Shown here: positions 6,956 to 40,642 of the stretch, piece by piece | Position numbering within the stretch: position 1 is the first letter of the stretch | Layout: each line of letters begins with the position of its first letter | Assembly: GCF_001194135.2 (NCBI RefSeq) | Contig: NC_069010.1 | Location: forward strand, 755,808-796,449 | DNA length: 40,642 nucleotides | Reading direction: 5' to 3' | From: Octopus bimaculoides | Lineage: Eukaryota | Translations under genes and position numbers: made by a program | The notes under the pieces: generated by a model | What the model was told of the DNA's origin: nothing | Database searches by the model: none | Seen by the model: the letters and a program-made list of their open reading frames with translations, nothing else

Positions 6956-7036
<81 letters not shown>

Positions 7037-11715: not shown

Positions 11716-11751
<36 letters not shown>

Positions 11752-15715: not shown

Positions 15716-15770
<55 letters not shown>

Positions 15771-18136: not shown

Positions 18137-18168
<32 letters not shown>

Positions 18169-21100: not shown

Positions 21101-22227
21101 ATACAGATGAAACATGCACAAACTTGTTATATTTTTCTGATGAAGCAAATGATCAGAGAAATAATGCGGCCACATGTACGAATGTAAGTTCTAATTACTA
21201 TGCTGGGGTTATTGATGATCTATTTAATGTGATTGATACATCTGATTGATACATACATACATACATACATACATACATACATACATACATACATACATAC
21301 CGAGAGCGGGGACTGAAAAGTTGAAGAATTTCTTGCCTTGGGTAAGCAAAAATACGGGAGGATCAGTTAATTATGATTTTAATCAACATATTTCCCTCAG
21401 ACTCATGCACTTATTGCAGCGGTTCTCGTTGTTTTAAGTCTTGTAAAAGAACGCGGAAGGCTGGGCTTCCAACCAGTCCTTTCACGATTCCCTTTCAGCA
21501 TCTTCTCGTATACAAAGATAGGTATATGGATAGATAGATATATAGTTAGATAGAATTGTAAGCCGTATCAGATAAAAGAAGTACAATATCTACTTTATAT
21601 GACAATAAAGTTAATTATAATCCATTCTAATGTATTTTATCAACTTGGGTTTTTAGAAGAAACGGTTAACGAGAGAGTAATCATGAGATCGTTTTGTACC
21701 ATTGTGCTTCCTTCTGTTTCATTAGTTCCGTATGAAACCCCATAGAAAAGACCATCGAAAGTGTCCCTATTCACTTTGGCAACACCAATAGCAAGATTCG
21801 AGTATGAAACTGCGAATTGCTGCTCTTCCAGTGGAATCTTTTCTGGCATCGCTTCTATAATGTTCAGCAATCTGTGAGAAAATAAGTAAAACGACTTTCA
21901 ATTAACAATGTATTTCGAATACGTAATTAGCTTTAGGTGTAATTACACTAATTATTTCGCTTAACAAATTTTTGCATTCTACTCTTGCTTCTAATACTTC
22001 TGTTGTTGTTATGTTAGCGTTCATGCAACAACTTTTATCATTTATGCCCTGCAAATATGGCCGCTGCAGCTATTGCTATTTCTTTTTCTTCTTCTTCTTC
22101 CTATTCTTCTTCTTCTTCTTCGTCTCCTGCTGCTGCTGCTGATCCTGCTACTACTACTACTACTATTATTACTACTACTACCACCACCACCACCACCACC
22201 ATCACCACCACCACCACCACCACCACC

Positions 22228-22281
<54 letters not shown>

Positions 22282-22303
22282 NNNNNNNNNNACCACCACC
22301 ACC

Positions 22304-22361
<58 letters not shown>

Positions 22362-24504
22362 TCAAAAGTGATTTGTATATTACCTGCTGGCACTTCTCTT
22401 CTCTTGTTCTGCCCCAGCCAAAACCTCCTCTGGTATGTTTACCAAATTGTTGATAGAGCGAAGTGCATTATTCACAGTCACTTTCGATATCAATGGCACC
22501 ATTTTCTCAAGAATGTCTACAGCGAAGTTAGCATCATCTTCTTTGAAATACATTGATTTCTGTGATATACCTAAGACCTTTTTTGAAATTTTGTCGATGT
22601 TTCCTGGAAAATTTAACATGAAATTTAAATAAATTACAGTCGCGTTGAGTTGAAATATTAGATGCCAATTAAGTGTTACATAACAATTAATGAATCACCA
22701 GAATTTAATTAACAACTCCGACTCTAAATAGCACAAAGATTGCTGAATGCGTTCAGTGTATCAGCTGTATACTCATTGTTACACATCCTTAGTGTCTCCT
22801 GCTCTGTAACATTAACTGAAATAGTGGGGGAGTTATACAGTACTATGGAGTCTTTTATTGTTACTTGATGGTGGTGGTAGTGGGGGCTGCACATACATTA
22901 GGGTGAAGCGAATAATGCAACTTTCGAAATTGGTAACCAAGAATCGATATTTCGTTGCAAATTAGAATTAACAGAAAGGAGTATAACGATCTGTGCGGTT
23001 AAATATGTCTTTAGGCTCCGCAATGCCATTGGAAGTTTTGTAAACTGTTATTTTTGGTCGAGTTTTGGATTTCATTGATTATATGTTGTAACGAATAACT
23101 ACTTCTACATGTCACAATGCAAAACAGTAAATATAGTATCCTTAATAATTTGAATACCAAGTTTCAATACAATTGACTAATATCTTGACGTTCCGAATTG
23201 AATATAAATAGAACGGGAGTGTGAGCTTCTCTCCAGTGCAACTGCAACGGTCGTTGCGTGTGGACGTATGTTGTACGTGTGCGAAGTTCTCTACTTTGAA
23301 CCTTGACTTTAGGCCATTGCATTAAAATTAATTCTCGTGTTAAATTCAGTGTTGTTTACATTTAGTGAGGCCTCATAAACCAATAACACATCATGATATT
23401 GAAATGTTAAGCGTGTTGCGGAGTCAAAAGATATAAAAGTCAGAGCTTGAGATTTTAACAGACTAATTTTCCAAACAATTTCGCAAAAGAAAACCAATTC
23501 GTAACAATGAAGGTGAAAAATAAAGTGAAGAATGGCAAATATGTTATAAACTGATTTTTCGCTCATTATTAAAACTTTCTAGTGAGCGGCGGAGCTTGAA
23601 GATGTAAATTTAAAAACTTTAGATTGTAACAATGATTTTTAAAGGATTTCGCAATAAGAAATATATTCTTAAAAACATATTCCGAAAATCTGTGTAAAAA
23701 TTTTTTTTTTTTGCTCCACCCTGATGGCAACCAATGAATTACCACACACCAGCTATCATCGACAGCCATTAACACCAACAAAATTATCTTCCAACCACAA
23801 GGTGAATCTAGACAAAGCGGGTCACTTCTCTAAAGAATAATACAGGTTTCATATATTGGCACGTGACCAGAAGTTTTGGTAAAGGAGTTAAGCTGATTAC
23901 ATTGACCCAGTGCTCAACTGGTGCTTATTTTATTGACACTGAAAGGATAAAAAGCAAAGTCGACTTCGGCGGAATTTGAACTCAGAATGTAAAGACTCCT
24001 GAAATACCGCTAACGATTTTGCTTGGTGTGCTAACGATTCTGCCGGCTCACCGACTAATTTAACAATTGACAGATTTTTACGAAGGTCTAATGAGAAATT
24101 GAAATCATCCCATCACTAAATGCATATGAACATCTATTCAATTTTACGGTATCATAATAACATTTGAAAGACGTAAATTGCTTATATTCTCTGACAAACA
24201 TGTATGTAGGGTGCGTCATAGAAGATTTAAATATTTTATAACGTAATACATTCGAAGAGGTATGTATCAGTAATATCCCTGTTGCTTTCCTGCTTCTCTA
24301 TCTACTCAGCCTCTCTCAAGAAGGTTAACAAAAGAGTAGTTTTAATGATATAATAATAAGCTCAACCCGCCTAAGTAATAAATTCTTTCATAACATTTCC
24401 ATAAGTGAATCAAATGATTTGGACGAGATGAATACATTGCTGGAGAACTCGAAACAGAGAATACGGCGCATCACCTCTTGGTAGATAATTTTAATAACGA
24501 ACGA

Positions 24505-24553
<49 letters not shown>

Positions 24554-26363
24554 GTGATCGAAATGGAACAGATATACAAAGGCATACACGCATATACCTC
24601 TTCTACTACTTCTACTATTGTAAATGTCCTTCGAAACTATTGCTCGCTCACCTGTATGAATGTCTTTTCTTGCGATGGTACTTAGTCGTTGAATAATCCT
24701 CTCTGCATTGTAGCACTGAGACATGTCTGGTACTTGCCAGATACCAGTAAACGGTGAACACTTTGCTGATGTCATATATTGACTTGATGCCATTTCTGAG
24801 TCTCCTACCGTTCTGGGAGAACTGAAAAAATAAATGTGAAATTTTGTCAGAAGAATTTCAGTTTCATCAGACTCGGAGGAATATAAGAAACCTTCGACCT
24901 GGTCGTAATTTAAACTCATAATTTTGTGAAAGAAGGATAATTGGTGTAATGTATTTTGGGGAGAAATCTATTATTTACTCCTGATTCCTATCCTCAAAAC
25001 TAAAGTAAAATATTTTCTAATTAGAGTCCAGATTTAAAAACAATATTCCTGCAGATGCTTTTATTTATTATAATTTGTTGGTTTTATGATTATCACAAGA
25101 TTGGTTGGAATGGTATAGGTGATGAAATATTAAGGAACTGGATTGTTAGTTCAAGTTGAGAGAGGGAATTAATTGTTTATATTTCATCATAGTCATTAGT
25201 AGTGATAGCAGCAGCAATAGATTTACGTATAAATGTACAGATTTGAGTAATTCCACCAGTTGGTTTTGTCTTAAAACTTATAAAACTCAGCCTCAGGGAG
25301 GAACAATTTAGATGTTTAGCATGTGAAATGACGCGGTAGAAATGAGAGAAGAGTGAGCGTGTTACATAGTCTATGATGAGTCAAATCCCACGATGATCTG
25401 CTTTCTCCACTTGCCATTATATAGTAGCAAAATTATAGCACTTCAATAATTACAAAATTGAATAAATAATATTAGCCGGAAATAAACAGAATCACCAATA
25501 GATTCTATTTGCTGTCCCTAGGGATGTTTTTTTTCTTCCTATTTTGTGACATTCTGACACTTGCAGGAAACTTTAAAGCTTTGTATACTAGTGATTTCAA
25601 ATTTTGGCACAAGGCCAGCAATTTTGTGTGGGGTGGGGAGTAATTCGATTACATAGACTCTAGTGTCCAACTGGTACTTATTTTATCGATCCCAAAATGA
25701 TGAAAGGCAAAATCGACTCCAGTGATATTTGAACTGATAACGTAAAGTTGGAAGAAATGACGCTAAGCATTTTGTCCGGCGCGATAACGATTCTGCCAGA
25801 TCGCCACCATAAAGCTTTGTCCAATATTGGCTTCAAATTTTGGCACAAGGCCAGCAATTTCAGGGGAAGGGATAAGTCGTTTACACCAAACCTAGTACTC
25901 AACTGGTATTTATTTTATTGATCCCGAAAAGATGAAAGACAAAGTCGACCTTGGCGGAATTTGAACTCAACATAAAGCTTTGTATAATATAGGCAACAAA
26001 GCAAACCTAGATAGTTAGACCAAGGCTAAATTGTATCAAATAATGTATGAAATGTGAAAATGCTGGGAGAAGAGATTGCAACCGATAGACATTTAAATCT
26101 ATCGTGTTAATCCATCTCGCTGTTATTTACGCTACAAAGTAACATTCTCTCACAATAGGATGGCGCTGAAAAACTTCAAAATTAGAGTAGAAATAAATCA
26201 AAATAAACCAACCAGTATCTTGTGGCTACATTTCCATAACATGGGAGCTCTGCAGTAGTTCCTATTTTTGTTATTGGCCAATAGAAAGTTCGATTGTTAG
26301 CTGATGTTGTGCTTTCATCACAAACCACTGAAAAGGAAACAAAACATGGATATGGGAAAAGTC

Positions 26364-26394
<31 letters not shown>

Positions 26395-26488
26395 TTGATG
26401 GTGGTGATTGTGGTGGTGGTGATGGTGTTGGTACTGGTGATGTTGTTAGTGCTGGTGATAGTGGTGGTGTGGGTGATGGTGGAGGTGA

Positions 26489-26557
<69 letters not shown>

Positions 26558-29500
26558 CAGCGGCAGCAGCAGCAGTAATTGCTGTTGTAAATAGTTTGGA
26601 CGTGCTGGCTGATTTGAGAACAATGATTCATGAACTGCTGCAAACATATATGGAAAGCGTTATACTCATACGCTATGAAAATCTTCAAAATATGTTAGGA
26701 CATTTTCGAACTGGTACTTTCCTTGAGGAAGCAAATATTTACTTCCCTACTGAGATATATACAAAATATGGGCATGTATAGCAGTGACATACAAGCAGTC
26801 ATTGAAAAAGATAGAGTCTGATTAAAGTAGGATTAGCAGAGTCTGATTTTCTGGATAAGAAATGCTTAATTTGGAGAAAATTTGAGCTCATCTATTTTGA
26901 GAATGTAACTGAGAATCGAAAGTCTTGGTGAATATCACCAGAAATAACAATTAGTAAAGACTTTCATATTCCTATATGACCCGCGATACTGACACAGACT
27001 CGCATCGCAACTCACAATTCAAACGTCAACATATTGTCCCTCTATTACCTTCCTTTTCACCACTATATAAAGAATCATTTGGAAAGCTCGAAATACCAGA
27101 AAAACGGATTATAACTGCTGGCCAAAATGTTGGGAATAGAAGTTAAATCTCCTAAATTCCTATATAAGGGGAAGATTTAACTTCTATTCCCAAATTTTGG
27201 CAAGCAGTTGTAATTNNNNNNNNNNNNNNNNNNNNNNNNNNNNNNNNNNNNNNNNNNNNNNNNNNNNNNNNNNNNNNNNNNNNNNNNNNNNNNNNNNNNN
27301 NNNNNNNNNNNNNNNNNNNNNNNNNNNNNNNNNNNNNNNNNNNNNNNNNNNNNNNNNNNNNNNNNNNNNNNNNNNNNNNNNNNNNNNNNNNNNNNNNNNN
27401 NNNNNNNNNNNNNNNNNNNNNNNNNNNNNNNNNNNNNNNNNNNNNNNNNNNNNNNNNNNNNNNNNNNNNNNNNNNNNNNNNNNNNNNNNNNNNNNNNNNN
27501 NNNNNNNNNNNNNNNNNNNNNNNNNNNNNNNNNNNNNNNNNNNNNNNNNNNNNNNNNNNNNNNNNNNNNNNNNNNNNNNNNNNNNNNNNNNNNNNNNNNN
27601 NNNNNNNNNNNNNNNNNNNNNNNNNNNNNNNNNNNNNNNNNNNNNNNNNNNNNNNNNNNNNNNNNNNNNNNNNNNNNNNNNNNNNNNNNNGCTGTCTCTG
27701 CCCTTTTCTATACATCGAGCAAACGGGATGCCGCTTTACTGACTGGTTTGCGGAACATCTCCGAGACATCCGACTCGGCAATGACACCCCGGTCTCGCGC
27801 CATTTCCGCTCTACCAGTCACTCTTTGCAACACCTGTCTGTGTTCGGATTGTCCTTACACAGGGGCCATCCGGACTCCTGTTTGCGCCGTGAAAAGGGAT
27901 TAATCTTCTCTCTTCGCATCTTTGCACCCCATGGGCTCAACTCTCCCTCCTCTTCATCTAACCTCCTCCCCTCACCTCTCTCCCGCTCACACCTACTTCC
28001 TCCCACCCACTTCTCCTCTCTCGCTCCGATTCCTAGTTCTTTTCTTCACTCCTACTCTCCTTCTCTTTTCTCTTCACCACTACTCACATTCTCCTTCCCC
28101 TTTCATCGTCATCTCTCCCTCATAAGCCCACACCACCCCTACACATTTCAACTCCACCTTTCCTATTCTTCCTAGCCCACCCACCCCATCCTTTACACCC
28201 ATTTCCACATACCCCACCTCTACCGCCACCCTCAGCATAACCCACACCCCACCCTTGCTTTCCCTACCCTTGCCTCCCCAACTCCCAACTCCATCACACC
28301 ACACCACTACACTATACACCATCATACCACACAACACATCACATCAATACACACCACCACACACACACCAGCACTGACCACTTCCCAGCCCCATATTTTC
28401 ACACCTACACACACACACGCCCATGTCAAGATCGCCAGCACTCTTCCAAACGCACATACAAACTCTCGTATACATACGCACGCGCACCTTCGTTTTGGGC
28501 TCACCACTACTTTATTATCTCCCCTTCTTCCTAGCTCTCCTGTGTGACCCTTCTGTCCGGCATTCGCCATGATAGATCGCTAGCCACTACACATTCTTTG
28601 TTTTCTTTCCTTGTTTCTTTCTGTGTTCCTTTCTGTGATAGAGCGTAGGCTCGAAACGTTAAATACTTTTTCACTTCCCTAGCATTAAACTNNNNNNNNN
28701 NNNNNNNNNNNNNNNNNNNNNNNNNNNNNNNNNNNNNNNNNNNNNNNNNNNNNNNNNNNNNNNNNNNNNNNNNNNNNNNNNNNNNNNNNNNNNNNNNNNN
28801 NNNNNNNNNNNNNNNNNNNNNNNNNNNNNNNNNNNNNNNNNNNNNNNNNNNNNNNNNNNNNNNNNNNNNNNNNNNNNNNNNNNNNNNNNNNNNNNNNNNN
28901 NNNNNNNNNNNNNNNNNNNNNNNNNNNNNNNNNNNNNNNNNNNNNNNNNNNNNNNNNNNNNNNNNNNNNNNNNNNNNNNNNNNNNNNNNNNNNNNNNNNN
29001 NNNNNNNNNNNNNNNNNNNNNNNNNNNNNNNNNNNNNNNNNNNNNNNNNNNNNNNNNNNNNNNNNNNNNNNNNNNNNNNNNNNNNNNNNNNNNNNNNNNN
29101 NNNNNNNNNNNNNNNNNNNNNNNNNNNNNNNNNNNNNNNNNNNNNNNNNNNNNNNNNNNNNNNNNNNNNNNNNNNNNNNNNNNNNNNNNNNNNNNNNNNN
29201 NNNNNNNNNNNNNNNNNNNNNNNNNNNNNNNNNNNNNNNNNNNNNNNNNNNNNNNNNNNNNNNNNNNNNNNNNNNNNNNNNNNNNNNNNNNNNNNNNNNN
29301 NNNNNNNNNNNNNNNNNNNNNNNNNNNNNNNNNNNNNNNNNNNNNNNNNNNNNNNNNNNNNNNNNNNNNNNNNNNNNNNNNNNNNNNNNNNNNNNNNNNN
29401 NNNNNNNNNNNNNNNNNNNNNNNNNNNNNNNNNNNNNNNNNNNNNNNNNNNNNNNNNNNNNNNNNNNNNNNNNNNNNNNNNNNNNNNNNNNNNNNNNNNN

Positions 29501-30806
29501 NNNNNNNNNNNNNNNNNNNNNNNNNNNNNNNNNNNNNNNNNNNNNNNNNNNNNNNNNNNNNNNNNNNNNNNNNNNNNNNNNNNNNNNNNNNNNNNNNNNN
29601 NNNNNNNNNNNNNNNNNNNNNNATATTATTATATAATTGAACGGCACGCATCCTCTTCCAAGTAAGTTTTATCTTAATAATTCTGATGCGTACTCTATTC
29701 TATCCTTTTACTCTTTCGTTTTTCTCTCTCCCTTTCTCTTATTCTTTTACCTCCTCTTCTCGCACTATTCTATCCTATTACTCTTTCGTTTTTTTCTCTT
29801 TTCCTTTCTCTTATTCTTCTACCCCCCTTCTCCCCTCCTATTTTCCTCACTTATCCTATCTCCAAATCTTTTTCTCTCCCCTTCACAGTTCTCTGCCTGT
29901 CAGTCTCTCTCCTTCACTATTCCGCCTTTGCTCACGTGGTTCCCACGTGACCCTCGACCATCTTTCTTTCTTCTAATTTGTGTTTCTATCTTTCTCTCTG
30001 TTGTAGCTGGACCAAGAATACGTATTCTTGTCTGTCTCCTGTCCAAGTTTGATTACGCGTTCGCCACCACAACCTTGTTGAGGCTTAGCAGCCCTTCGTG
30101 TTTGTTTTTACTGTCGTGCAAAATCCCAAATTTTATTTAATTTGCTTTGCGGGAGCAATTGTTTTGTCGAAGGCGTATCTTGTTGTGAAATGCTCGAAAT
30201 GCAGAAGTAGAAAAACAGTCAACAACTGATGAAGGGTCGTTTTTAATGTTGCTTGTCTAGTTTTCCATTTGTGTCTTTCGTTCGAAAAAATAGTTCATAT
30301 TCTATGTACTCGTACTTCGTAATTTTTGTTGTTTACGATTTGTGACATCCTGTGCCCACATATGCATATATGTGTATANNNNNNNNNNNNNNNNNNNNNN
30401 NNNNNNNNNNNNNNNNNNNNNNNNNNNNNNNNNNNNNNNNNNNNNNNNNNNNNNNNNNNNNNNNNNNNNNNNNNNNNNNNNNNNNNNNNNNNNNNNNNNN
30501 NNNNNNNNNNNNNNNNNNNNNNNNNNNNNNNNNNNNNNNNNNNNNNNNNNNNNNNNNNNNNNNNNNNNNNNNNNNNNNNNNNNNNNNNNNNNNNNNNNNN
30601 NNNNNNNNNNNNNNNNNNNNNNNNNNNNNNNNNNNNNNNNNNNNNNNNNNNNNNNNNNNNNNNNNNNNATACGTATACATGTAAGTATGTACATATACGT
30701 ATGTATGTATGCATATATCTATATATATCATATATATCATTATATGATTGAAAGCCAAGTAAGTTTTATCTATCTATCTCCCTCCCCCCTCTCTCTCTCT
30801 CTCTCC

Positions 30807-30841
<35 letters not shown>

Positions 30842-33800
30842 CACCCAGATATGCATCTATATATACATGTGGATGAAGGTATGTACATACATGTACATAT
30901 ATATGCATATACGAATATATTTTTTGTATTACACGATCGAACGCACGTGTTACCCTTTCATGTAAGTTTTGAACTTTATTTTTCTGACGCAACTCTCTCT
31001 ATCTTTGTATCTATCTCTCCCTCTCATTCTTCCTTCTACTGTTCTTTGCCTCTCCTCTTCACTATTATACATATATCTCTCTCGGTCTCTCTTTGCTCAC
31101 TTATATTCTACTTCCTCCCCTTTTTCTCCCTCTACCACTCTTTCTCCTTACCCCTTACTGGTTACATATGTCCAGTCACTCATTCTTTTCATATCTTAGT
31201 CTCCCCAAGCTCGCACGTACATTTTCGTCCTTCCAGTTCGTGCTTCACAGCGTTCCATATACACATACTTTTCCACGTCTGGCCGTATAGCCTTTCTTGT
31301 GTGTTTATTTCACTGTTTCGTTTTCCTGTCTTGTTTTCCGTCCGCCACTATCCTCCATGGAACAAATTTAATTTGTGTCCGTGGGAAGAGTCATTTTAAC
31401 GATGCGTCCTGCCCTAACTCTTCGAAACGTCAGTGTTATAATGGTGGCAGCTGATGAAGGAAATGCTCTTATGTGGACTGTGTGTTTTCTGTACCCTGTT
31501 TATCATTTTGTCCATGTATTTTGCAACGTCATGTACCCAGATATGCATCTATATATACATGTGGATGAAGGTATGTACATACATGTACATATTTATGCAT
31601 ATACTCATATATTATTTATATATATATAGGTAAATGTTCAAATTAGGTTGGTAGGGATATACAATCCTAGCGGGTACCGTATTCACTTTTACCGGTCAAT
31701 AAAGCTGGCTAACCTCCGTGAGTGTAGAAAAACTTCAGTTAGTTTATTTTACTATCCTCAGTAGATCTTCACATCGGTAAATCAATATATCTTTATAGAG
31801 ACTGCATATTGTCGGTAGAAAAGAAATAATAAATTGAGAATAAGGAGAATAAAGATTCATATATACAGTTTTACTCCGCAGTCAATCACGTATTTCCATT
31901 TCTGCACCTACATGTGGGTCTGTTGAAAATTTTAGGCACATTCCAAAGTTTTGTATCTTGCTGTGCATTTGGGAGTTATTTGCCGCTTCTTCAGGATGCT
32001 ATTAATAGCGTTTCAGATTCCATCTGAACTAAAAACAAGTCCAACCAAAATATTTCATACACGTGGTGTTAGTATTTTAAGAATAGTCTAAATTCTGACG
32101 TTCTCAACACCGTAGCTGATTAAATATAAACTCCTAAGTAAGTAAACTGAATAATAAAATCAACGATATCCATACATTTTTAATTAAGTATAAAATTAGA
32201 AAATTAACTAATTGTGCAATAGCTCGTTATTAACCATAATAATAATAAGAAGAAAAGTTGTGGTCGTAAGAGTGATAGGGATCATAATTGTAGCAACAGC
32301 AATAACATCAACATACAGTAAGTAACCTGATACAGAATATACTACCATTCACCACATTTGCTGCCTAGTGACCCATTCTTGGACAGTTAGTCACTTGTTT
32401 TCCTAACCAGCAGAAACGATGTTAATAGCACCCTGAAGAAGCTGCCAGACGCATACCAAGATGCATGAGACTGCAGTGTGCACAGAATTGCAGCAGAAGG
32501 AAACATGGAGGTGCAGAAATGGAAAGGCGTGGTTGACTGCGGAACGAAACTGTATGTATGAATCTTTGTGGTCCTTATTATTGATACAAACGCACACACA
32601 CACACACACACACGCGCGCACACACACACGCACACACACACACACACATACACACATGTATGCATGCATGTATAAAGCGTAAAGAAATAAGAATTTGGAA
32701 TCCGGGCAGGTAACCTATTGTCTATCTAACATAATCCAGATCTGGTTAACCACATCGAATGACATAGAACATACAGAAATGTTTCAAATAAACAGTTAAA
32801 CGGCAAGTCCAGAGTTCGCTTCATTGGATTTCACACAGCATACAAAGTATATAATGAAGGCATCATAAAAAAAGAATGAAGAATTATACATCTTTTAAAG
32901 TATTCATTACTGTATTATTCTCCTCAATCAGAGAATTACTCTCGTTTAATGAGAGTAATAATGTAATAAATTTTGAAGGTGTATGATAGTCGATTCTTCT
33001 TTACGATATCTTGATGATATATGTATAAAGCATGTATGCTTATGCACGCACAGACACATACACAAACACATACATACACACGCATACACACATATACAGA
33101 GTGTCTCCAAAGGATGTATACACACATTGAATGATTGTGAAGTCAGTTCGTATAATACATTTCATTTTCAGACGGATTTTAGTTCTTTATGAACGCTTGT
33201 TTTGAAATTATGACCATTCTGGTTCAATTGCTGTTGTGGCTCAAACATCAAGGAGCCTCGTGGTTTCTATGACCAAAGCCTCGATCATCATCTACCGGCT
33301 TGGATTATCCATTATCACAGCAGTTAAAACAGTCAACTGGAAGTCACTACTTGTCCGCTGAAGCAAAATTGGAAATAGCGTATACCTACACACACGTTCA
33401 TATGTACGTACTTTGAATTACAGGCACACAGATACATATATATATATATATAAACATAAAATATATATAATTCACTCACATACACACACATGTATCTATC
33501 ATTCCTAGCTCAAAAATGAACGTGACCACATCGCACAAAATAAATTTGAGATCAGGAAAATTATTTGTGGCATTAAATAATTTTCCTGTTTGAGTAAAGG
33601 AAATCGTACGATTTGTGTGAATTTTTCAATCCAGTAGAGCCTGGACATTCTACTTCTCTACAGAGTAAGTAGAAAACATTTTTGCCCTCGATGTAATTGG
33701 TATAATTAAAAAGAAAATGAGCAAAGACAAACAGCTCAGTAGGGACAAGGAGAAGGAAAGTGAACGAAGAAAAGTTGAAAATGAATTTTTGATTTATTGA

Positions 33801-34138
33801 AATTATCCACGATTCGAGAAAATGTAAATAAATAGATACGTGCGATTGTGTGTGTGTATGTATCCTGTGGTATCATCTACTCATGATGACGATGACGACA
33901 ACGGCGAAGATGATGGTAATGGTGATGATAAAGCTAATTATGACGGTAGTGGTGATAAACATAAGAGACACAATACTTACTTTCATCAAATAATTTCATG
34001 TGACTTCGCTGAACTCCGAAGTTACGCAAAGTGTGGGATTTTTTTAAAACTTGGGAGATATTGCACCACAGTTGTTTATTAGTTATCTTGCTATATAGTT
34101 TGGAGTAAATAGCAAATATCGTTTGGTTTCTGTCTGAA
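2863..34138 (-). CDS. Adhesion GPCR gene 1 (ADGRG/GPR126-GPR112-like), multi-exon, partial: distal ectodomain-HRM-GAIN/GPS-7TM. TM2 exon not seen; TM5-7 not found (probably off-window)
   Basis: 11 exons with canonical AG/GT sites; phases match at every junction except across the missing TM2 exon. Translation shows HRM cysteines/tryptophans, the GAIN motif INSHVLAANV...LDEPLNITF, GPS CVYW...W...GC...C.CDHL/TSFALLM, TM1 LSIISYTGCGIS, TM3 LHYFLLASFVWMSVEAFY and TM4 WGLPAVIV. Confidence 0.93.
3220..3400 (+). mobile_element. RTE 3'-end relic
   Basis: KIKWPGRVAK...EWM resembles the RTE KLKWAGHVAR...W motif. Confidence 0.35.
5058..5202 (-). CDS. Gene 1 TM3 exon (AVAAFLHYFLLASFVWMSVEAFYVYLSVVVVFKTY...ILAWG)
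   Basis: attgtag acceptor, G/GTATGT donor; hallmark ADGR TM3 motif. Confidence 0.95.
5845..7034 (+). mobile_element. R4/Dong-clade non-LTR retrotransposon, internally deleted, with (TAA)n tail
   Basis: N-terminal RCKWTKEE...W.E...ENNLMNQVRVIRRKGYLT motif joined near 6630 to the C-terminal end KEVEKTTKYSEL...IPVVIGALG...LQNAALLGTAHILRKVL*; (TAA)n at 6957-7034; no RT. Confidence 0.75.
7626..8040 (+). mobile_element. tRNA-derived SINE
   Basis: Head gtggtaagaagtttgct...ggttcag with A/B-box-like motifs; body shared with 534-1305 and 11597-11725. Confidence 0.75.
8622..8790 (+). repeat. (GAA/GGA)n purine tract
   Basis: Directly visible next to a gap. Confidence 0.9.
9586..9790 (+). mobile_element. 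Probable SINE-like interspersed repeat (different family)
   Basis: GC-richer island abutting a gap; recognised by resemblance only, no second copy confirmed in the window. Confidence 0.4.
10150..10745 (-). mobile_element. Penelope-like element 3' end with hammerhead-bearing tail
   Basis: KFCNICNSELFHIL...VNAFIERSYRC*H resembles the PLE C-terminal C..C..E...I...N..E..C.H pattern; hammerhead motif downstream at 10194-10280. Confidence 0.55.
10194..10280 (-). ncRNA. Minimal type I hammerhead ribozyme motif (PLE-type), stem II imperfect
   Basis: ctttcc-CTGATGA-gacga...ttgtcttc-GAAAC-ATAT-GTC-ggaag; palindromic stem III ACATATGT; GUC site. Confidence 0.5.
10750..11110 (-). mobile_element. Mariner (DD34D family) transposase fragment
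   Basis: HTH region, WVPHKL and IVTGDEKWVLY motifs; truncated at both ends. Confidence 0.92.
11270..11555 (+). mobile_element. tRNA-derived SINE
   Basis: A box TGGCTTAGTGG and B box GAGTTAAATTCC, followed by a non-tRNA body. Confidence 0.7.
11597..11725 (+). mobile_element. SINE 5' part ending in (TA)n
   Basis: Homologous to the head at 7626-7780. Confidence 0.7.
12430..15330 (-). mobile_element. Decayed Ty3/Gypsy LTR retrotransposon (K02A2.6-like): gag, RT, RNase H end, integrase zinc finger
   Basis: gag FKCLIFVQGLTA...EQDPNLTL; RT THKGLYKFNRFPFGIK...SLDDLLI...KCEF..FLGQII; YDFKLEYLPSEKLGHADGLS; FHTRHSGISRMKSLMRS; stops, frameshifts and gaps; LTRs not identified. Confidence 0.9.
15710..15770. 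repeat. (TAG)n microsatellite
   Basis: Directly visible. Confidence 0.95.
15995..16110 (-). CDS. Gene 1 exon I, TM1 (NVYQTEGETDNALSIISYTGCGISFVFLILTIIIHVCFR)
   Basis: ttgtag acceptor, AG/GTAAGC donor; ADGR TM1 motif. Confidence 0.93.
16325..16792. repeat. Perfect 98-bp direct repeat (16325-16422, 16695-16792) flanking 272 bp
   Basis: ggcagtgactttttac...cgcatagacata identical in both copies. Confidence 0.95.
16839..16994 (-). CDS. Gene 1 exon H, GPS motif and Stachel (NASNLQCVYWD...CCCDHLTSFALLM)
   Basis: ttttcag acceptor, ATG/GTTGGT donor; canonical GPS. Confidence 0.95.
17393..17521 (-). CDS. Gene 1 exon G, GAIN (VTQNPS...INSHVLAANVPNITINKLDEPLNITFNLIHQ)
   Basis: ctttacag acceptor, CAG/GTAATA donor, 43 codons; too short for the ORF track, translated by hand. 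Confidence 0.92.
17662..17870 (-). mobile_element. SINE family copy (others at ~23840-24055, 25595-25805, 25835-25972)
   Basis: Shared ttggcacaaggccagca...ctggtacttattttatcga...gtcgac...aatttgaactca; tRNA-like head with GTTCAAAT on the minus strand. Confidence 0.8.
18663..18756 (-). ncRNA. Minimal type I hammerhead ribozyme with intact core
   Basis: Stem I TCCTCT/AGAGGA; CTGATGA; stem II AGGAG-G-CAGTA/TACTG-TA-CTCCT; GAAAC-AGCT-GTT with palindrome ACAGCTGT. Confidence 0.72.
19034..20120 (+). mobile_element. Tc1-like (DD34E) transposon, defective, 3' truncated
   Basis: TA/CAGGGGTTGGACAAAAT left end; paired-like HTH ORF at 19217; FSDES, FQDDNAPIH and SPDLNTIEHLW motifs; stops and frameshift. 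Confidence 0.92.
20505..20657 (-). CDS. Gene 1 exon F, GAIN (IYDSPN...SISLP...RINFFSMRDDKLYR)
   Basis: cccaccag acceptor, AGG/GTATGG donor, 51 codons; SISLP and DDKLY GAIN-type motifs. Confidence 0.9.
21700..21871 (-). CDS. Gene 1 exon E, GAIN (LLNIIEAMPEKIPL...GTNETEGSTM)
   Basis: ctcacag acceptor; phase-0 donor ATG/GTACAA is weak but is the donor matching the next exon's phase. Confidence 0.85.
22080..22360. repeat. Compound trinucleotide microsatellite (CTT/CTG/CTA/CCA)n
   Basis: Directly visible; ends about 25 nt from the exon D donor. Confidence 0.95.
22384..22603 (-). CDS. Gene 1 exon D, GAIN subdomain A (GNIDKISKK...AEQEKRSASR)
   Basis: tttccag acceptor, AG/GTAATA donor, 220 nt in phase; helical GAIN-A-like sequence. 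Confidence 0.9.
23840..24055 (-). mobile_element. SINE copy (17662 family)
   Basis: Sequence similarity to the other copies in the window. Confidence 0.75.
24652..24821 (-). CDS. Gene 1 exon C, HRM second half (SPRTVG...CSPFTGIWQVPDMSQCYNAE...)
   Basis: ttttttcag acceptor, G/GTGAGC donor, 170 nt = 1+56 codons+1. Confidence 0.9.
25595..25972 (-). mobile_element. Two tandem SINE copies (17662 family)
   Basis: Two successive caaattttggcacaaggccagcaattt starts; aaagctttgt recurs at the junctions. Confidence 0.8.
26213..26327 (-). CDS. Gene 1 exon B, HRM first half (VCDESTT...WPITKIGTTAELPCYGNVATRYC)
   Basis: Polypyrimidine tract + cag acceptor; TG/GTTGGT donor; HRM C..W..G..C pattern; phase 2 completes Cys with exon C. 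Confidence 0.9.
26365..26578. repeat. Compound trinucleotide microsatellite (TAG/TGG/TAT/CAG)n
   Basis: Directly visible; about 35 nt upstream of the exon B acceptor. Confidence 0.95.
27691..28690 (+). mobile_element. Penelope-like (Neptune-type) element 3' end: GIY-YIG C-terminus, CT-rich tail, hammerhead relic
   Basis: LYIEQTGCRFTDWFAEHLRDIR...PVSRHF...H...LIFSLRIFAPHGLN; tail motif CTGTGATA-GAGC-GTAG-GCTC-GAAACGTT at 28633-28660. Confidence 0.8.
30920..31535 (+). mobile_element. PLE-tail-like insertion (CT-rich, two hammerhead relics) flanked by 58-bp direct repeats
   Basis: GAAGAGT/ACTCTTC-GAAACGTC, then CTGATGAAGG...GCAACGTC; flanking repeats 30843-30900 and 31535-31592. Confidence 0.5.
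31866..32552. mobile_element. Non-autonomous Tc1/mariner-type element (MITE) with long diverged terminal inverted repeats and TA flanks
   Basis: TA/CAGTTTTACTCCGCAGTCAATCACG versus reverse complement TA/CAGTTTCGTTCCGCAGTCAACCACG; similarity persists for about 170 bp. Confidence 0.75.
33860..34138 (-). repeat. Inverted-duplication segment (homologous to ~36576-36860 on +): exon A plus downstream intron
   Basis: Exon homology, plus the intron flanks give similar spurious ORFs in the track (33840..34082 + versus 36570..36872 -). Confidence 0.88.
33981..34138 (-). CDS. Gene 1 exon A (distal ectodomain; SDRNQTIF...SHMKLFDE), phase 2 to 1
   Basis: tttcag acceptor, A/GTAAGT donor, open frame; phase 1 joins exon B (A+TG); homologous exon at 36576-36740. 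Confidence 0.75.
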
Positions 34139-34179
34139 CTGAAATAAAAATAAATATACGTACATAGATAGATAAACAA

Positions 34180-34212
<33 letters not shown>

Positions 34213-35267
34213 CAGATAGATAAATAGATAGATAGATAGATATATAGATAGACAGAATAAATAAATAAATATAATTAGTTTAATTATATATAGGACGTGT
34301 GAGGATTTTAATATGAATCTATACTTGCAAACGTTTGTGTATAGACGTGCAAACTCGCTTTGTCATAGGTATGTATTAACACTCGTTCGTGTATTTATTT
34401 GCATATACTGCGCTGAAGAGAGAAGAAACTCTTGAAATTACCTAATTCGCAATTAATGTGGAGTCTTTTTAAATATCTTCTCACTAGTTCGCTTTTAATC
34501 GCATGTATTTGTGGAGTTTTTTTCGGTAGCTTCGTAATGTTTGGACATTAATTCAGTATGGAGGAGATAAGTCTTGGTTTGACTTTCTCCCTTAAAATAA
34601 TTATATATATATAATTATTAATTTAATATAATCCTTTATTAAATACTTTTATTAGAATTTTAAAAGTTGTGCTTTTCTTTTATTCAAGCTATGTATTAAA
34701 ATTAATATTTTGTATAAATTTCTGATAATGTTATAAAACAAATTGTTTGTTAATCAATTTTCCTGGTGTTGAGTTGTCCTGGTATTGAGTCGGCGGAGTT
34801 GAGTTGGCGGTGGTGAGTTGTTCCTATTAATATATATATATATATCTTAGTCGAGTCAGTCTATTGCTGATATGAGTTTCCTTTTTGAGTGTACAGAAGG
34901 TTCAGGCGAGGTATGGTTGGAAAAAATCTAATGGCCTTTGCTCAATTATTTATTGTTTTCTAGTCTTAGGTTGTGGCGATGGGGGATAAAGAATGATAAA
35001 GGCGAGAAAGAAGCAAATAAAAAAAAAACAAAGAAAAAAGAAGAAAAACAACGAGTGGGTGAAGGATGAGAATAATGGAACTAAAGTGAAAAGAAAAGAA
35101 TTAGTAAAGAGAAGAAAAGAGGAAATGAAGAGAAAATGGGTGAAAAGAGGAAACGAATGGAGTGAAAGTTGAGCAAGAAGAAAATAGTCGATGAACATTT
35201 AGAAGCAATGAATGAATAAGTAGATCACTTTGCCTAAATCCTCACATTCACTCTTCTCTTCGCTCAC

Positions 35268-35519
35268 CTGTAGTCTTTTAATTTTCAAGAGGACTTGTGA
35301 AGAGAGGGCACTGTGTACTTCTCCAACTTGGATTTTCTCAATCCATCCAACGCAAGATGGAAAACGGAAGTCAAATGATAATGATGATGATATCGATAAT
35401 GACGATGATGCAGTATAAATGAATATACATATATTAGTTGTTAGCGACAGAAGACATATTACTACTGTATAAGCAATCTTTATAACCTGCTTAAGTTGGC
35501 TATACTTCAAGAAGGCCAT
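35268..35519 (-). CDS. Candidate first coding exon of gene 1 (MAFLKYSQ..., hydrophobic N-terminal stretch)
   Basis: 84 open codons from ATG to a strong CAG/GTGAGC donor; signal/anchor-like segment IKIAYTVVICLLSLTTNICIFIYT. Phase 0 does not match exon A (phase 2). Confidence 0.3.
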
Positions 35520-36575
35520 AAAACTGGAATATTCTGTCTGAGAAAGCGTCTCGTATAAACGTCTGGTGCTACAGAATATGAGCAGTGGACGAAATATGTG
35601 CAGTGTACATGATACTTTCTCAGAGCGACTACTGCGGTTTTATAATATTCACACAGACAGTCAGGCAGACAGGCAGATAGACAGACACGTAGACCGTTAA
35701 ATTTTATCTGCAGATAGAATTTTGAGGCGCAATGGCAGTTATGACGTTCCGTATATGAATACATGTAAATAATGCGATTGAAGATAGAGAAATAGGGAAT
35801 GGGTGTAGATGCATATTTCAGGAGTTATTGATCCCCCTTCAACACTTCATCCATTCACTTGAGGGTTATAAGTCAATACTGTGTTCTATTTTTCGTGTAA
35901 GCAGCGCGATTCAACAACTTTATGCCTGCAACCATACATACACACATAAATACATACATACATACATACATACATACATNNNNNNNNNNNNNNNNNNNNN
36001 NNNNNNNNNNNNNNNNNNNNNNNNNNNNNNNNNNNNNNNNNNNNNNNNNNNNNNNNNNNNNNNNNNNNNNNNNNNNNNNGAGCTATATATATATATAGCT
36101 ATAAACAGTTTCATTGTTCTCTTTCCCAGGACTTAAGTCGCTATTTTACGTGTGCAGTGAGAATAATGAAAATATTTAATGTCAATCTTTGTATCCTACA
36201 TAATGTTAATATACTTTAAGAATGTCATAACTTATTATTTATTTTGGCCGGATTCAAACCTTGGTCGCAGTAACAAAGTTTACCCGCCACACTTCTCGAC
36301 GTGTTGGACGCATTCTAGGCCACTGTCTACAATCCAGTTGTCAATGTGTGACAACTGGATTGTAGAGAACAATGAAACTGTTTATAGCCACCGAAGTGAT
36401 AAGTTCATAGACACAAGTAAGATAAATAATACCATTTCATAGTCATTAATACACAGTAGTTTAAATACTATATTCCTTTACTCCCATCCTCTCTGTGGTC
36501 ATTCCATTAATATATACCCTTCACATTTTCCCTATGTTTCCATTTATCTATCTAACTGCATATATTTTATTACAG

Positions 36576-36740
36576 ATTCGACCACAATAAAATAATATAT
36601 ACTATGTACTGTAGTGTACTNNNNNNNNNNCAAAATAACTGAAGATCAACTACGACGCAACATCTCTCGCGTTTTGACCAAATCCCAGGCATTGCATGAC
36701 TTAGGAGTCCAGCAAAGTCACATGAAATTGGTTGATGAAA
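36576..36740 (+). CDS. Adhesion GPCR gene 2 (paralog), exon A homolog (FDHNKII...SHMKLVDE)
   Basis: ttacag acceptor, A/GTAAGT donor; about 27/52 aa identical to gene 1 exon A; the 10-N gap should be 3 nt to match the 158-nt homolog. Confidence 0.75.
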
Positions 36741-37069
36741 GTAAGTATCGTGTTTCTTATTGATTTTATCACCATTGTCATCATAACTGGTTTTATCCTC
36801 TCCATTACCATCGTTTTCGGCGTTGTCGTCATTGTCAACCACAGTAGGTGATTTCATAGGACACGCGAACACTTTACAATTATAGAAGAGATGGCATTTG
36901 AACCAACTCTAAACGACATTTATTTAGCTGTGAATAAGNNNNNNNNNNNNNNNNNNNNNNNNNNNNNNNNNNNNNNNNNNNNNNNNNNNNNNNNNNNNNN
37001 NNNNNNNNNNNNNNNNNNNNNACGACATTTATTTAGCTGTGAATAAGCTGAATAACAATAAGTCGCTAG

Positions 37070-38930
37070 GGTGTGAATGAATCTGTGCAGATGTCTGGAA
37101 ATATGGGGGTGACAAAATGTTTGNNNNNNNNNNGTGACAAAATGTTTGAACTCTTAAATATATTAATTTGTCACTGTTGGAGACATGAGAAAGTGCATCA
37201 AGACTGGATTGATGCCACTTTTGTCTCCTTGTATAAATCGGGGCCGAAGGATCTGTGTGGAAGGTTTTGCGAGATTTCGCTTTTGTCTGTGGTTGGAAAG
37301 GTTCTTGCCAGCANNNNNNNNNNTGTTAGAACATTTAAATACCTTTATAGTTCCAAATATAGTGTCTGAGTCTGAGTGTAGTTTTCGTTCCTCCAGGGGC
37401 ACAGCTGATTGTATCTTTACTGCCAGACAANNNNNNNNNNNNNNNNNNNNNNAGAATCTTGCTCTATACCATTGCTTTGTTGATTTGAGAAAAGCATTCG
37501 ATACTGTTAGTCGAAATGCTCTGTGGCTAACTCTAAGAAAAATAGTTTGCCCCGAAAAATTTGTAATCATGATCAGGGCTTTGCAACAAGATATGAAAGT
37601 CATAGTTAACTTTGGTTTGGTGGTAGGCTCTCTGAATCTTTTGCTGTGGAAAATGGAGTAAAGCANNNNNNNNNNNNNNNNNNNNNNNTCTTTGCAATAT
37701 ACTTTGCTGTTGTGTTGTTACATGATTATCAAAACTCTGAGCAGGGTATTTACATAAACTATCGAGCCACAGGGAATGTTTTTAATCTAACCAGACGGAA
37801 ATTCAAAACGAAGGTTTTACTTCACTCATTAGGGAACTGTTATACGCTGACGATTGCCTTCTTGCCATTCATTCTGAAACAGGTCTGCAATATCTTGTAT
37901 CTGCATTTGACTCAGCTTNNNNNNNNNNTGATTTTGGCTTGACTATCAACTTGACAAAAACAATTGTAATGCATCAACCTGCGAGTGGTATTGTTTGTAA
38001 CCAATCTAAAATTTTTGTTAAGGGCAAGTTACTTGAGGTTGTCGATTTGTTCATCTACCTTGGAAGCTCTGTTCAAAATTTTGGAAATCTTGATACAGAA
38101 ATACAACTGCGAATTCAAAGGGTAGCAAAAATATTTGATGGCTTAGAGTCACGCGTTTGGTGCCAGCGACATATAAATAAGCTGGCTCTTTACAAATCAT
38201 TTGTCTTACCATCTCTCTTGTATTCCTGTGAAACATGGACTTGTTATAAAAGGCATTTCAAATTGTTAANNNNNNNNNNNNNNNNNNNNNNNNNNNNNNN
38301 NNNNNNNNNNNNNNNNNNNNNNNNNNNNNNNNNNNNNNTTTGAGGAACCAAATGAGATGGTGTGGCCATATTGTTCGAATGGCATATGAACGCAAGCCGA
38401 AACAGCTGTTTTATGGTGAGCTTGCTGAGAGGAAACGCTATCGGTGTAAAACCTAAAAAAAGATTTAAGGGCGGCATACGGACTATTATGAAGTCACTTG
38501 GAATGGATGTATAGAAGACATAAAAACCCATGCTTCGGATCGAGTTGGATGGCGACCAAAAGTGTGGAGTGAAGTGAAAGCATTTGAAGAGGCCAGGATA
38601 AGGCATGCAAGACTCAGCGATCGAGAANNNNNNNNNNNNNNNNNNNNNNNNNNNNNNNNNNNNNNNNNNNNNNNNNNNNNNNNNNNNNNNNNNNNNNNNN
38701 NNNNNNNNNNNNNNNNNNNNNNNNNNNNNNNNNNNNNNNNNNNNNNNNNNNNNNNNNNNNNNNNNNNNNNNNNNNNNNNNNNNNNNNNNNNNNNNNNNNN
38801 NNNNNNNNNNNNNNNNNNNNCTTATCTGCAGCTGTTGGTGGTCCAAATTTGACGTGAAATCTGTGTGGGTGTCTTTTCAGAACATACATTCTCCGGTTTA
38901 AAAAGCGACATCAGGGGTGGTTAAACTCTG
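37070..38930 (+). mobile_element. RTE-clade LINE, RT and 3' region, decayed and gap-riddled, in the gene 2 intron
   Basis: QDWIDATFVSLYK, ISLLSVVGKVLA, FRSSRGTADCIFTARQ, FVDLRKAFDTVSR, LLYSCETW and RWCGHIVRM-type motifs. Confidence 0.92.
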
Positions 38931-40597
38931 CATAAGGAGTAGAAAACCACCATATATATATATATAATATAGATTTTCCGCTGATACATATCTTTTATCT
39001 TTTCATTGTTTCTATCATTAGAATGCGGGCATGCTGGGTCGCCGCCTTCAGGAATTTGTAGTCGAATGTATTTACCACAGTTATTGTTATCTATATATAT
39101 ATATNNNNNNNNNNNNNNNNNNNNNNNNNNNNNNNNNNNNNNNNNNNNNNNNNNNNNNNNNNNNNNNNNNNNNNNNNNNNNNNNNNNNNNNNNNNNNNNN
39201 NNNNNNNNNNNNNNNNNNNNNNNNNNNNNNNNNNNNNNNNNNNNNNNNNNNNNNNNNNNNNNNNNNNNNNNNNNNNNNNNNNNNNNNNNNNNNNNNNNNN
39301 NNNNNNNNNNNNAGAGTAGGAAGATAGACAAATACCATACTGCTGGTACTTCAGCTTAGAAGTTTCTAAGACATTACGAACACTTTTTTGTTTCCTGCTC
39401 AGTCAACAATTGATGAAGAGATTNNNNNNNNNNNNNNNNNNNNNNNNNNNNNNNNNNNNNNNNNNNNNNNNNNNNNNNNNNNNNNNNNNNNNNNNNNNNN
39501 NNNNNNNNNNNNNNNNNNNNNNNNNNNNNNNNNNNNNNNATATTTTCGTATTTCGTATATATGTTGTTTTCGTATTTCATGATTTTATATGCCGTGGTGT
39601 CCAGTGCCCATATATGCATGTATATACAAATATATGCATGTACATATATATGTGTATGTATGCATATACATATATTANNNNNNNNNNNNNNNNNNNNNNN
39701 NNNNNNNNNNNNNNNNNNNNNNNNNNNNNNNNNNNNNNNNNNNNNNNNNNNNNNNNNNNNNNNNNNNNNNNNNNNNNNNNNNNNNNNNNNNNNNNNNNNN
39801 NNNNNNNNNNNNNNNNNNNNNNNNNNNNNNNNNNNNNNNNNNNNNNNNCTTTGACATGCAGTTGTAAGCCTTCTGAAAGATTCTTGGTATTGTGGTGAAA
39901 AGGAAGATAATAGAAGTGCGGTATGTTGACAAATGAATTGTGTGTTGCGTTGCAAATCTGTATCAGCTTCGTGGGTCATCTGTAAATATATTTTTCTTTA
40001 CACATTGTTATTTCTGGTGGTATTGACCAGGACTTTTGATTCTCAGTTACATTCTNNNNNNNNNNNNNNNNNNNNNNNNNNNNNNNNNNNNNNNNNNNNN
40101 NNNNNNNNNNNNNNNNNNNNNNNNNNNNNNNNNNNNNNNNNNNNNNNNNNNNNNNNNNNNNNNNNNNNNNNNNNNNNNNNNNNNNNNNNNNNNNNNNNNN
40201 NNNNNNCTCATCTCATCTTTCTTTTATCAGTATTTACCTTTTACAATGATTGCCTATATGTCTCTGCCATACACACCCGTATTTTGTACATATCTCAGTA
40301 TGGAAGTAAATATTTCTGTCCTTACATATCATGGAAAGTTCATGGTGAACCACTTTCGAGTTAATTGTTTAATAGATCGTTGCTAAGGTCACGCGTGTCT
40401 TGCCTTAAAGAGAATAATATTTCTAAAATGTCCGATCTAAAATATTTTGAATAGCTTTGTTAGCGTAAGTGTATATCTCTCTCCATATATGTTTGCAACA
40501 CGTCAAAACTATTGTCCTCAAATCCGGTCACAACTATTTATTTACAACAACGACTACTACTGACTTCTCTGATATCCATGTTTTGTTTCTTCTTCAG

Positions 40598-40642
40598 TGG
40601 TTTGTGATGAAAGCACAACATCAGCTAACAATCGAACTTTCT
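40598..40642 (+). CDS. Adhesion GPCR gene 2, HRM exon B homolog (truncated by window end)
   Basis: tcttcag acceptor; all 45 visible nt identical to the reverse complement of 26283-26327; phase matches exon 36576-36740. Confidence 0.88.

Follow-up and report, generated by a model that had tools for sequence, protein, structure and literature searches.

A misoriented scaffold probably explains an apparent head-to-head pair of adhesion GPCR paralogs on Octopus bimaculoides chromosome 30

Do two adhesion G protein-coupled receptor (GPCR) genes of Octopus bimaculoides stand head to head on chromosome 30 (C30), as the assembled sequence displays them, or were they brought into that position by scaffolding? 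The question concerns C30:755808-796449, a stretch of 40,642 nt (hereafter the window; 36% G+C, 27 runs of N) on a chromosome of 10.08 Mb in a genome of 2.34 Gb and 145,327 sequences, which we examined together with a wider neighbourhood of 240 kb of C30 around it. The region holds parts of two different paralogs of the octopus adhesion GPCR family that combines leucine-rich repeats (LRRs), Cys-rich exons, a GAIN-GPS region and seven transmembrane segments (7TM; single segments TM1 to TM7); we call them gene 1 and copy 2 and mark the exons of the latter with a prime. We find that their head-to-head layout is very likely a scaffolding artefact, which lies in the orientation of one small block of sequence whose placement is itself approximate.

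In the sequence as assembled, the inverted matches do exist and lie far above chance. When the window is compared with itself, 33860-34090 aligns with 36631-36864 (77%, E 4e-45), 26900-27088 with 39867-40055 (79%, E 3e-41), 26733-26836 with 40212-40315 (82%) and 26283-26382 with 40543-40642 (92%, E 3e-35); once downstream sequence is included, the inverted homology extends past the window across a whole 13-kb scaffold (C30 792438-804862 on the plus strand against window 34090-17481 on the minus strand). Both exon A copies are preceded by a polypyrimidine-AG acceptor and end in GATGAAA/GTAAGT, and both exon B copies start CAG/TGGTTTGTGAT (a slash marks a splice or cleavage boundary; Table 1). 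Acceptor sites, donor sites and splice phases are equal in both copies. The initial annotation of this DNA was therefore correct that exons A and B occur twice with their intron flanks in inverted orientation and equal splice phases, the boundaries being exact. A 10-N gap within exon A' (36621-36630) is spanned by one alignment to each ortholog; the frame shifts by +1 over the 10 N and is kept only if the real gap length is divisible by 3, and alignment to exon A suggests a true size of 3 bases. A further pair of tool-reported inverted "repeats", 35980-36101 and 39088-39209, consists of N aligned to N only.

Each copy has an ortholog of its own in other Octopus species. For gene 1 this is L041, an O. 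vulgaris locus without N (GCA_951406725.2, CATOCA020000001.1:885826-938893, gene P0003), which is identified as the ortholog by its colinearity with the window from 34238 down to 2583, that is from exon A to the TM4 exon, at 83-90% across introns and exons; the exon A peptide shares 34/51 residues with P0003 and 20/46 with P0160 of O. sinensis. The orthologs of copy 2, at 86-92% identity, are P0160 (XP_029652812.2) and CAI9744521.1 of O. vulgaris. Copy 2 itself lies on block X (C30:791887-804862, plus strand), a single 13-kb shotgun scaffold, about 56% of it N, between two 100-N joins. Read on its plus strand, X is colinear with L047 of O. sinensis (CM016887.1:2742346-2827578) from 49763 to 59893 and with L048 of O. 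vulgaris (OX597843.1:18515367-18555129) from 9939 to 21987, at 80-92% identity; the colinear span runs from exon A' as far as exon G', whose first 13 codons stand at the very end of X. The exon A' region has 86.5% nucleotide identity to L047 and to L048, and its peptide is identical to P0160 at 11/13 and 27/36 positions, against 4/10 and 18/36 to P0003.

The two copies are 72-79% identical to each other in exon-plus-flank alignments, where gene 1, copy 2 and a "gene 0" group (C30:636-640k and unplaced scaffolds) form an unresolved three-way split; no near-identical copy of copy 2 was found anywhere in the genome, its best relatives standing at about 80%. Because each copy goes with its own ortholog, the duplication predates the species split, and the copies are neither alleles nor the product of a recent, local inverted duplication. 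The arms are not each other's closest relatives, each being closer to its cross-species ortholog, which does not fit a palindrome made by local duplication. Haplotype duplication is common in draft invertebrate assemblies, but the idea that two alleles or haplotigs of a single gene were assembled next to each other can be set aside almost entirely here: the introns are 72-82% identical, well short of near-identity, and reciprocal orthology refutes such a reading, each copy being closer to a different O. vulgaris or O. sinensis gene (83-92%) than to the other copy. Judged by these alignments, gene 1 and copy 2 are two old, anciently separated paralogs, in agreement with the initial view that they are paralogs and not alleles.

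How, then, did two old paralogs come to face each other? The published chromosome assembly is an earlier short-read shotgun assembly ordered via Hi-C (HiRise, then Juicebox curation), whose authors attempted neither shotgun improvement nor gap closing and used a default gap of 100 bp (PMC9068888 supplement). The 240 kb contain 93 gaps, with exactly 100 N in 11, exactly 10 N in 13 and variable, estimated lengths in the others; from the assembly method and these counts together we read the 100-N runs as Hi-C joins between shotgun scaffolds. No sequence continuity is seen across the join at 35980-36079, through which gene 1 and block X are connected. At its other end X adjoins scaffold S3 (C30:804963-812300) across another 100-N join, and S3 matches the orthologous loci in reverse, C30 804965 to 812299 corresponding to L047 43606 to 40103 (88-91%) and L048 3664 to 259. 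The Cys-rich LU' exon on S3 (C30:809934-810089, minus strand) is identical to P0160 at 47/50 residues, compared with 46/60 for the LU exon of the next scaffold, S4.

Both relatives, whose genomes were assembled from long reads, carry all exons of the copy 2 locus on one strand, in the order CQTC 39989, LU 41782, GWTKSF 43760, A 49780, B 51008 and so on to G 59823, GPS 60376, the TM exons and a tail at 75183 in L047; the one 100-N gap of L047 (8591-8690) is far off, and L048 has no N. The assembly of O. bimaculoides makes the G' end of X abut the "43606" end of S3. If X alone is flipped, its A' end meets that end of S3 and the ortholog order is restored; the join would in that case lack a 5.7-kb stretch with the GWTKSF' and A0' exons. 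Family exons lie on the minus strand on S3, S4, S5, S1 and S0, so X is the only scaffold that disagrees, and the apparent breakpoints (S1 to X, X to S3 and S3 to S4) are all at 100-N joins, which means that no read-derived sequence supports any inversion junction.

Scaffold S4 appears to be the 5' part of gene 1, as its GWTKSF region is 87.8% identical to the region upstream of the gene 1 ortholog (L041 5756-6038) and 79-81%, a paralog level, to L047. With S4 so assigned, the copy 2 pieces S3 and X would be interleaved inside gene 1. The gene 1 ortholog of O. vulgaris has 7.9 kb between its GWTKSF exon and exon A, no copy 2 material was found upstream of exon A, and L041 has no inverted A/B copy. 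In O. vulgaris the orthologs of gene 1 and copy 2 are on different sequence records, and adjacency of the two genes was not seen within the loci read in O. vulgaris or O. sinensis. Synteny in the relatives, which the initial annotation had named as a check, thus speaks against the inverted pair.

Two candidate features on S3 were rejected. C30 806118-808832, which matches the TM1-TM2 intron of gene 1, could have been a plus-strand TM1-TM2 intron of copy 2, making X and S3 colinear, and proved to be a high-copy dispersed repeat; a read-supported inversion junction within S3 was discarded in turn, the same stretch being an insertion without counterpart in both orthologs. A direct repeat (C30:809937-812225 against 815663-817711, 75-78%) comprises the Cys-rich LU exon and its upstream intron and exists because S3 and S4 belong to different paralogs. 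A stretch of 798 bp on S4 (C30:825311-826101) is 84% identical to L041 33944-34716, which is single-copy and lies in the TM2-TM3 intron of the O. vulgaris gene 1 ortholog; the O. bimaculoides stretch occupies the LRR-LRRCT intron, some 55 kb distant, and not the corresponding intron of gene 1, which may point to a low-copy element or to a further misassembly.

We infer that the strand conflict between X and S3 arose in scaffolding, not from a true rearrangement in O. bimaculoides. Hi-C scaffolding would have set X, wrongly oriented, between two 100-N joins inside an intron of gene 1, a place that is probably right only approximately, and the misoriented X would create the apparent head-to-head palindrome. 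Small scaffolds are often misoriented by Hi-C. Block X resembles such cases in being 13 kb long, mostly N, flanked by 100-N joins on both sides and put right by a single flip; it differs from them in that the error is deduced here from sequence comparison.

Exon B complicates the picture. The first 45 nt of exon B' equal exon B (40598-40642 against 26327-26283, 45/45), with flanking intron about 85-92% identical; over this stretch the O. sinensis and O. vulgaris orthologs differ (VCDENTTSTNNGTF against VCDESTTSNNNQTF), and VCDESTTSANNRTF stands in both copies of O. bimaculoides. Either exon-level conversion between the paralogs or a contig end entering a collapsed repeat could account for the identity.

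Three observations count against a scaffolding error. The scaffolder placed X beside S3, so X probably belongs somewhere nearby; the assignment of S4 to gene 1 depends on 287 bp, at 87.8% to L041; and the 45/45 identity of B and B' could reflect conversion between physically close paralogs. The evidence used here is assembled sequence and its comparison between species, and a true lineage-specific rearrangement in O. bimaculoides retains a small share of the probability. Under such a rearrangement a 13-kb segment of the paralog, from A' to G', would have been inverted, or transposed in inverted orientation, into the intron upstream of gene 1 exon A, breaking the paralog and forming an imperfect inverted repeat of 12-17 kb with a 2.4-kb spacer. 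The deposited assembly does show this layout, Hi-C made neighbours of X and S3 and hence carried a locally informative signal, and the exon B identity is compatible with gene conversion between nearby copies. Yet every junction falls in a 100-N join, both long-read relatives lack the layout, those exons of X that can be read still have open frames and splice sites, a state not expected of a broken gene unless the break is recent, and one flip of one small scaffold explains all of it. We consider this rearrangement unlikely, and a real inversion within the 5' intron of gene 1, in a fast-evolving receptor cluster, a shade less likely again. Were an inversion true, the repeat could promote gene conversion, or it could be a source of antisense or double-stranded RNA directed at both receptors.

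Could the two genes nevertheless share a promoter, as the initial annotation had suggested? Exon A does not begin the gene; it is internal and has a conserved acceptor. Full-length members of the family, namely P0160 (989 aa, O. sinensis), P0040 (1091 aa, O. vulgaris, gene range 114 kb) and P0012 of O. bimaculoides, join upstream exons to exon A and then continue into GAIN and 7TM. The exons before A provide a signal peptide with LRRNT, 24-residue LRRs, LRRCT, CQTC, the Cys-rich LU exon (pattern CC..LCNKN, for which Pfam did not confirm a Ly6/uPAR assignment), "GWTKSF" and A0. The first mapped exon of L047 lies at least 24 kb upstream of exon A. Past copy 2, 5' family exons occur on the minus strand at C30 809.9k, 813.6k, 815.7k, 817.8k, 821.2k, 827.2k and 861.7k; no plus-strand family exons were found in the 100 kb downstream of the window, and none upstream able to serve copy 2. 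A search across the 240 kb for short A0 exons and a second GWTKSF exon returned only the one GWTKSF exon at C30:813.6k.

Besides the 100 N, the 2.4-kb spacer between the exon A copies comprises a (TCTA)n microsatellite, a dispersed repeat and some 1.1 kb of further sequence, and homology to the L041 intron upstream of exon A ends at 34238. Since exon A is internal and the signal-peptide and LRR exons lie tens of kilobases upstream, the spacer is not a shared promoter. Two complete receptors divergently transcribed from the spacer would fit the inverted orientation and the short spacer of the assembly, and some annotated models do start at or just before exon A (P0001, with MKLFDEM, and P0003, at exon A0). 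However, models beginning at exon A are without a signal peptide, P0160, P0040 and P0012 join signal-peptide, LRR and Cys-rich exons to it, no plus-strand 5' or 3' family exons lie within 100 kb, and the spacer offers a microsatellite, a dispersed repeat and 100 N. In place of first exons facing each other across contiguous sequence, the assembly has two exons that begin at splice acceptors and are connected solely by a 100-N join, and the divergent pair with a shared promoter becomes highly improbable.

Several predicted O. vulgaris and O. sinensis isoforms (P0028, P0029, P0030 and P0037) contain two A-type modules (GWTKSF-A0-A) followed directly by the C-terminal tail exon of the receptor, with no 7TM; they may be read-through or chimeric models across tandem members, or secreted isoforms.

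Where is the remainder of copy 2? Neither block X nor the plus strand downstream of it yielded GAIN/GPS or 7TM exons of copy 2, and exons C'-F' fall in gaps of 4405, 1467 and 1418 N, the first of which (C30:796450-800854) begins where the window ends, in the middle of exon B'. The ortholog P0160 carries GPS and 7tm_2, and the part of L047 from 59.9 to 64 kb (rest of exon G, GPS exon, TM1 and TM2 region) is matched at 85-93% by unplaced contigs of about 300 bp. These contigs are C124929, C4343, C53184, C117913, C56408, C27283, C27467 and C30305, and a piece of an upstream intron is on unplaced C89246. A further match at C30:2567391-2567758, 89% identical to the TM2-exon region of L047 and 1.77 Mb from block X, may hint at a true position of copy 2 near C30 2.57 Mb. 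The O. sinensis copy 2 ortholog sits at 2.74-2.83 Mb of its own chromosome. Transposable-element matches dominated searches of the whole genome with the 5' and 3' portions of L047.

The copy 2 gene is shattered in the assembly, and it very probably has GAIN and 7TM exons, judging from these matches, though not downstream in the assembly. For the initial annotation, which would have given up its second gene if such exons were lacking downstream, the outcome is divided: none follows on the plus strand, and probable GPS-TM matches exist on unplaced contigs. Likewise, its reading of both copies as parts of adhesion GPCR genes holds, the GPS, GAIN and 7TM exons being on the minus strand, and its head-to-head arrangement is not supported.

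Gene 1 is represented in RefSeq by XP_052834106.1 (P0001), a model of 433 aa named "adhesion GPCR G6 isoform X1". Pfam GPS scores 49.5 bits in it (cut-off 22.5), and the GPS/GAIN site that characterises adhesion GPCRs (class B2) is present. Autoproteolysis at HL/T followed by tethered-agonist signalling, established for the adhesion GPCR family, is the presumed mechanism. The 7TM exons readable in the window are those of TM1, TM3 and TM4 only; TM2 is expected in the gap at 12880-13473 and TM5-7 in that at 563-1100, and in orthologs PF00002 scores 112.6 (P0003) and 123.9 bits (P0007). The P0001 model is truncated because conserved exons sit in gaps, and its final residues are an out-of-frame reading of the TM3 exon (5201-5154). 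The hormone-receptor-like Cys motif of gene 1 is spread over exons B and C, whose Cys/Trp pattern resembles HRM by our own reading, the Pfam score being sub-threshold (PF02793 HRM, 17 bits in the paralog P0012, cut-off 26.2).

Gaps in the A-B intron of gene 1 (27216-27690, 28692-29622 and 30379-30668) have flanks colinear with the gap-free O. vulgaris ortholog, and the gap at 36939-37021 in copy 2 is intronic. The most conserved exons are the ones lost in gaps (TM2 and TM5-7 of gene 1, C'-F' of copy 2), as expected if near-identical exons of an expanded family break short-read contigs, and the RefSeq models shortened by such exon-swallowing gaps are 433 and 424 aa long.

An octopus-specific expansion of adhesion GPCRs, reported as expressed in axial nerve cord, suckers and skin, has been published as group 3 of Ritschard et al. 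2019 (PMC6408891), and the initial suggestion of an expansion is in line with the literature: the family is expanded in the genome. Group 3 shares with the genes studied here the GPS motif, an adhesion-type 7TM and, in some members, LRRs; its genes are co-localised in the O. bimaculoides genome, and NCBI gives the name "adhesion GPCR G6(-like)" to the two genes described here. A head-to-head pair is not reported there (PMC6408891).

Among solved structures, ADGRG2 (E 6e-62) and ADGRG6 (GPR126; E 1e-56) are the best matches to GAIN-B and 7TM, and gene 1 has an autoproteolysis-type HL/T site. The octopus N-terminus differs from that of vertebrate ADGRG6 in consisting of LRRs and a Cys-rich exon, not CUB and pentraxin (Pfam finds LRR families only in P0012, P0033 and P0014), and "G6" is therefore a name of similarity, in the 7TM only. 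LRR region, hormone-receptor-like motif, GAIN and 7TM follow one another as in ADGRA2/3 (GPR124/125), and precomputed domain lists give LRR, GAIN_ADGRA3 (PF26588), GPS and 7tm_2 for P0040 and P0160; the differences from ADGRA2/3 are that a search for domains gave no Ig domain, that the 7TM resembles subfamily G more closely and that HRM stays under the Pfam cut-off.

The adhesion GPCR family is itself of biological interest and already described; new here is the reciprocal orthology of two members over three Octopus species, with a hint that gene conversion has acted on an exon. The locus also carries a warning, as small gap-rich scaffolds of expanded gene families are easily flipped or interleaved in Hi-C-ordered short-read assemblies, and a palindromic gene pair whose halves are joined by an N run of fixed length is not to be taken as biology.

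Table 1. Coordinates of features in the window (position 1 is C30:755808).
Feature	Position	Strand	Details
Gene 1 exon A	33981-34138	-	internal exon; encodes ...SDRNQTIFAIYSKLYSKITNKQLWCNISQVLKKSHTLRNFGVQRSHMKLFDE; acceptor tttcag/, donor /gtaagt, phase 1
Gene 1 exon B	26213-26327	-	VCDESTTSANNRTFYWPITKIGTTAELPCYGNVATRYC; first half of hormone-receptor-like Cys motif
Gene 1 GAIN region to TM1	15955-24826	-	tblastn with P0001, open reading frames (ORFs)
Gene 1 GAIN-region exons	~24826-24623, 22604-22383, 21873-21697, 20657-20502, 17551-17393	-	tblastn with P0001
Gene 1 GPS exon	17012-16839	-	CCCDHL/TSFALLM; tblastn and ORF
Gene 1 TM1 exon	16125-15955	-	tblastn with P0001
Gene 1 further 7TM exons	5283-5053, 2936-2862	-	tblastn with P0001; colinear with L041
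100-N Hi-C join within gene 1	7526-7625		flank order and strand as in O. vulgaris ortholog
(TCTA)n microsatellite	~34162-34290		next to exon A
High-copy dispersed repeat	34300-34830		upstream of exon A; dozens of 75-90% copies genome-wide
100-N placeholder	35980-36079		HiRise join, S1 (gene 1) to block X (copy 2); sole link between exon A copies
In-window part of block X	36080-40642	+	colinear from A' to G' with L047 and L048
Copy 2 exon A'	36576-36740	+	encodes ..DHNKIIYTMYCSVL, gap, KITEDQLRRNISRVLTKSQALHDLGVQQSHMKLVDE; holds 10-N gap 36621-36630
SINE-like high-copy repeat, start	36866-36938		copies 93-96% identical on many chromosomes
Non-LTR retrotransposon reverse transcriptase fragments, gap-riddled	37029-38600	+	A'-B' intron; Pfam RVT_1 17.3 bits, under cut-off
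Copy 2 exon B'	40598-40642	+	first 45 nt; 45/45 identical to exon B; cut by window end

In the A'-B' intron, the motifs FVDLRKAFDTV and YADD at 37029-38600 are what we take to be non-LTR (long terminal repeat) reverse transcriptase; Pfam did not confirm a suspected Penelope/GIY-YIG ORF at 27168-28175. The F-G intron of gene 1 holds a remnant of a Tc1/mariner-type transposase (19208-20080, plus strand; Pfam HTH_Tnp_Tc3_2 60 bits, DDE_3 47 bits), which also occurs in the O. vulgaris ortholog (L041 26748-27791, 85%), so that it was inserted before the species split; a second ORF, this one mariner-like, is at 10753-11139 on the minus strand. An element of about 150 bp, resembling a short interspersed element (SINE) or miniature inverted-repeat transposable element (MITE), has four copies in gene 1 introns (17648-17799, 23836-23985, 25595-25793 and 25824-25969; 71-79% identical), at least six in L041, and is also present in scaffold S4. 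The GPS-TM1 intron contains an exact 98-bp direct duplicate (100%; 16325-16422 and 16695-16792, 370 bp apart) that looks like a contig-end assembly duplication rather than a real repeat. Long trinucleotide microsatellites at 22124-22364, 26364-26577, 6957-7038 and 15709-15770 give spurious low-complexity ORFs on both strands (poly-T, poly-S, poly-V and poly-L) and many self-matches.

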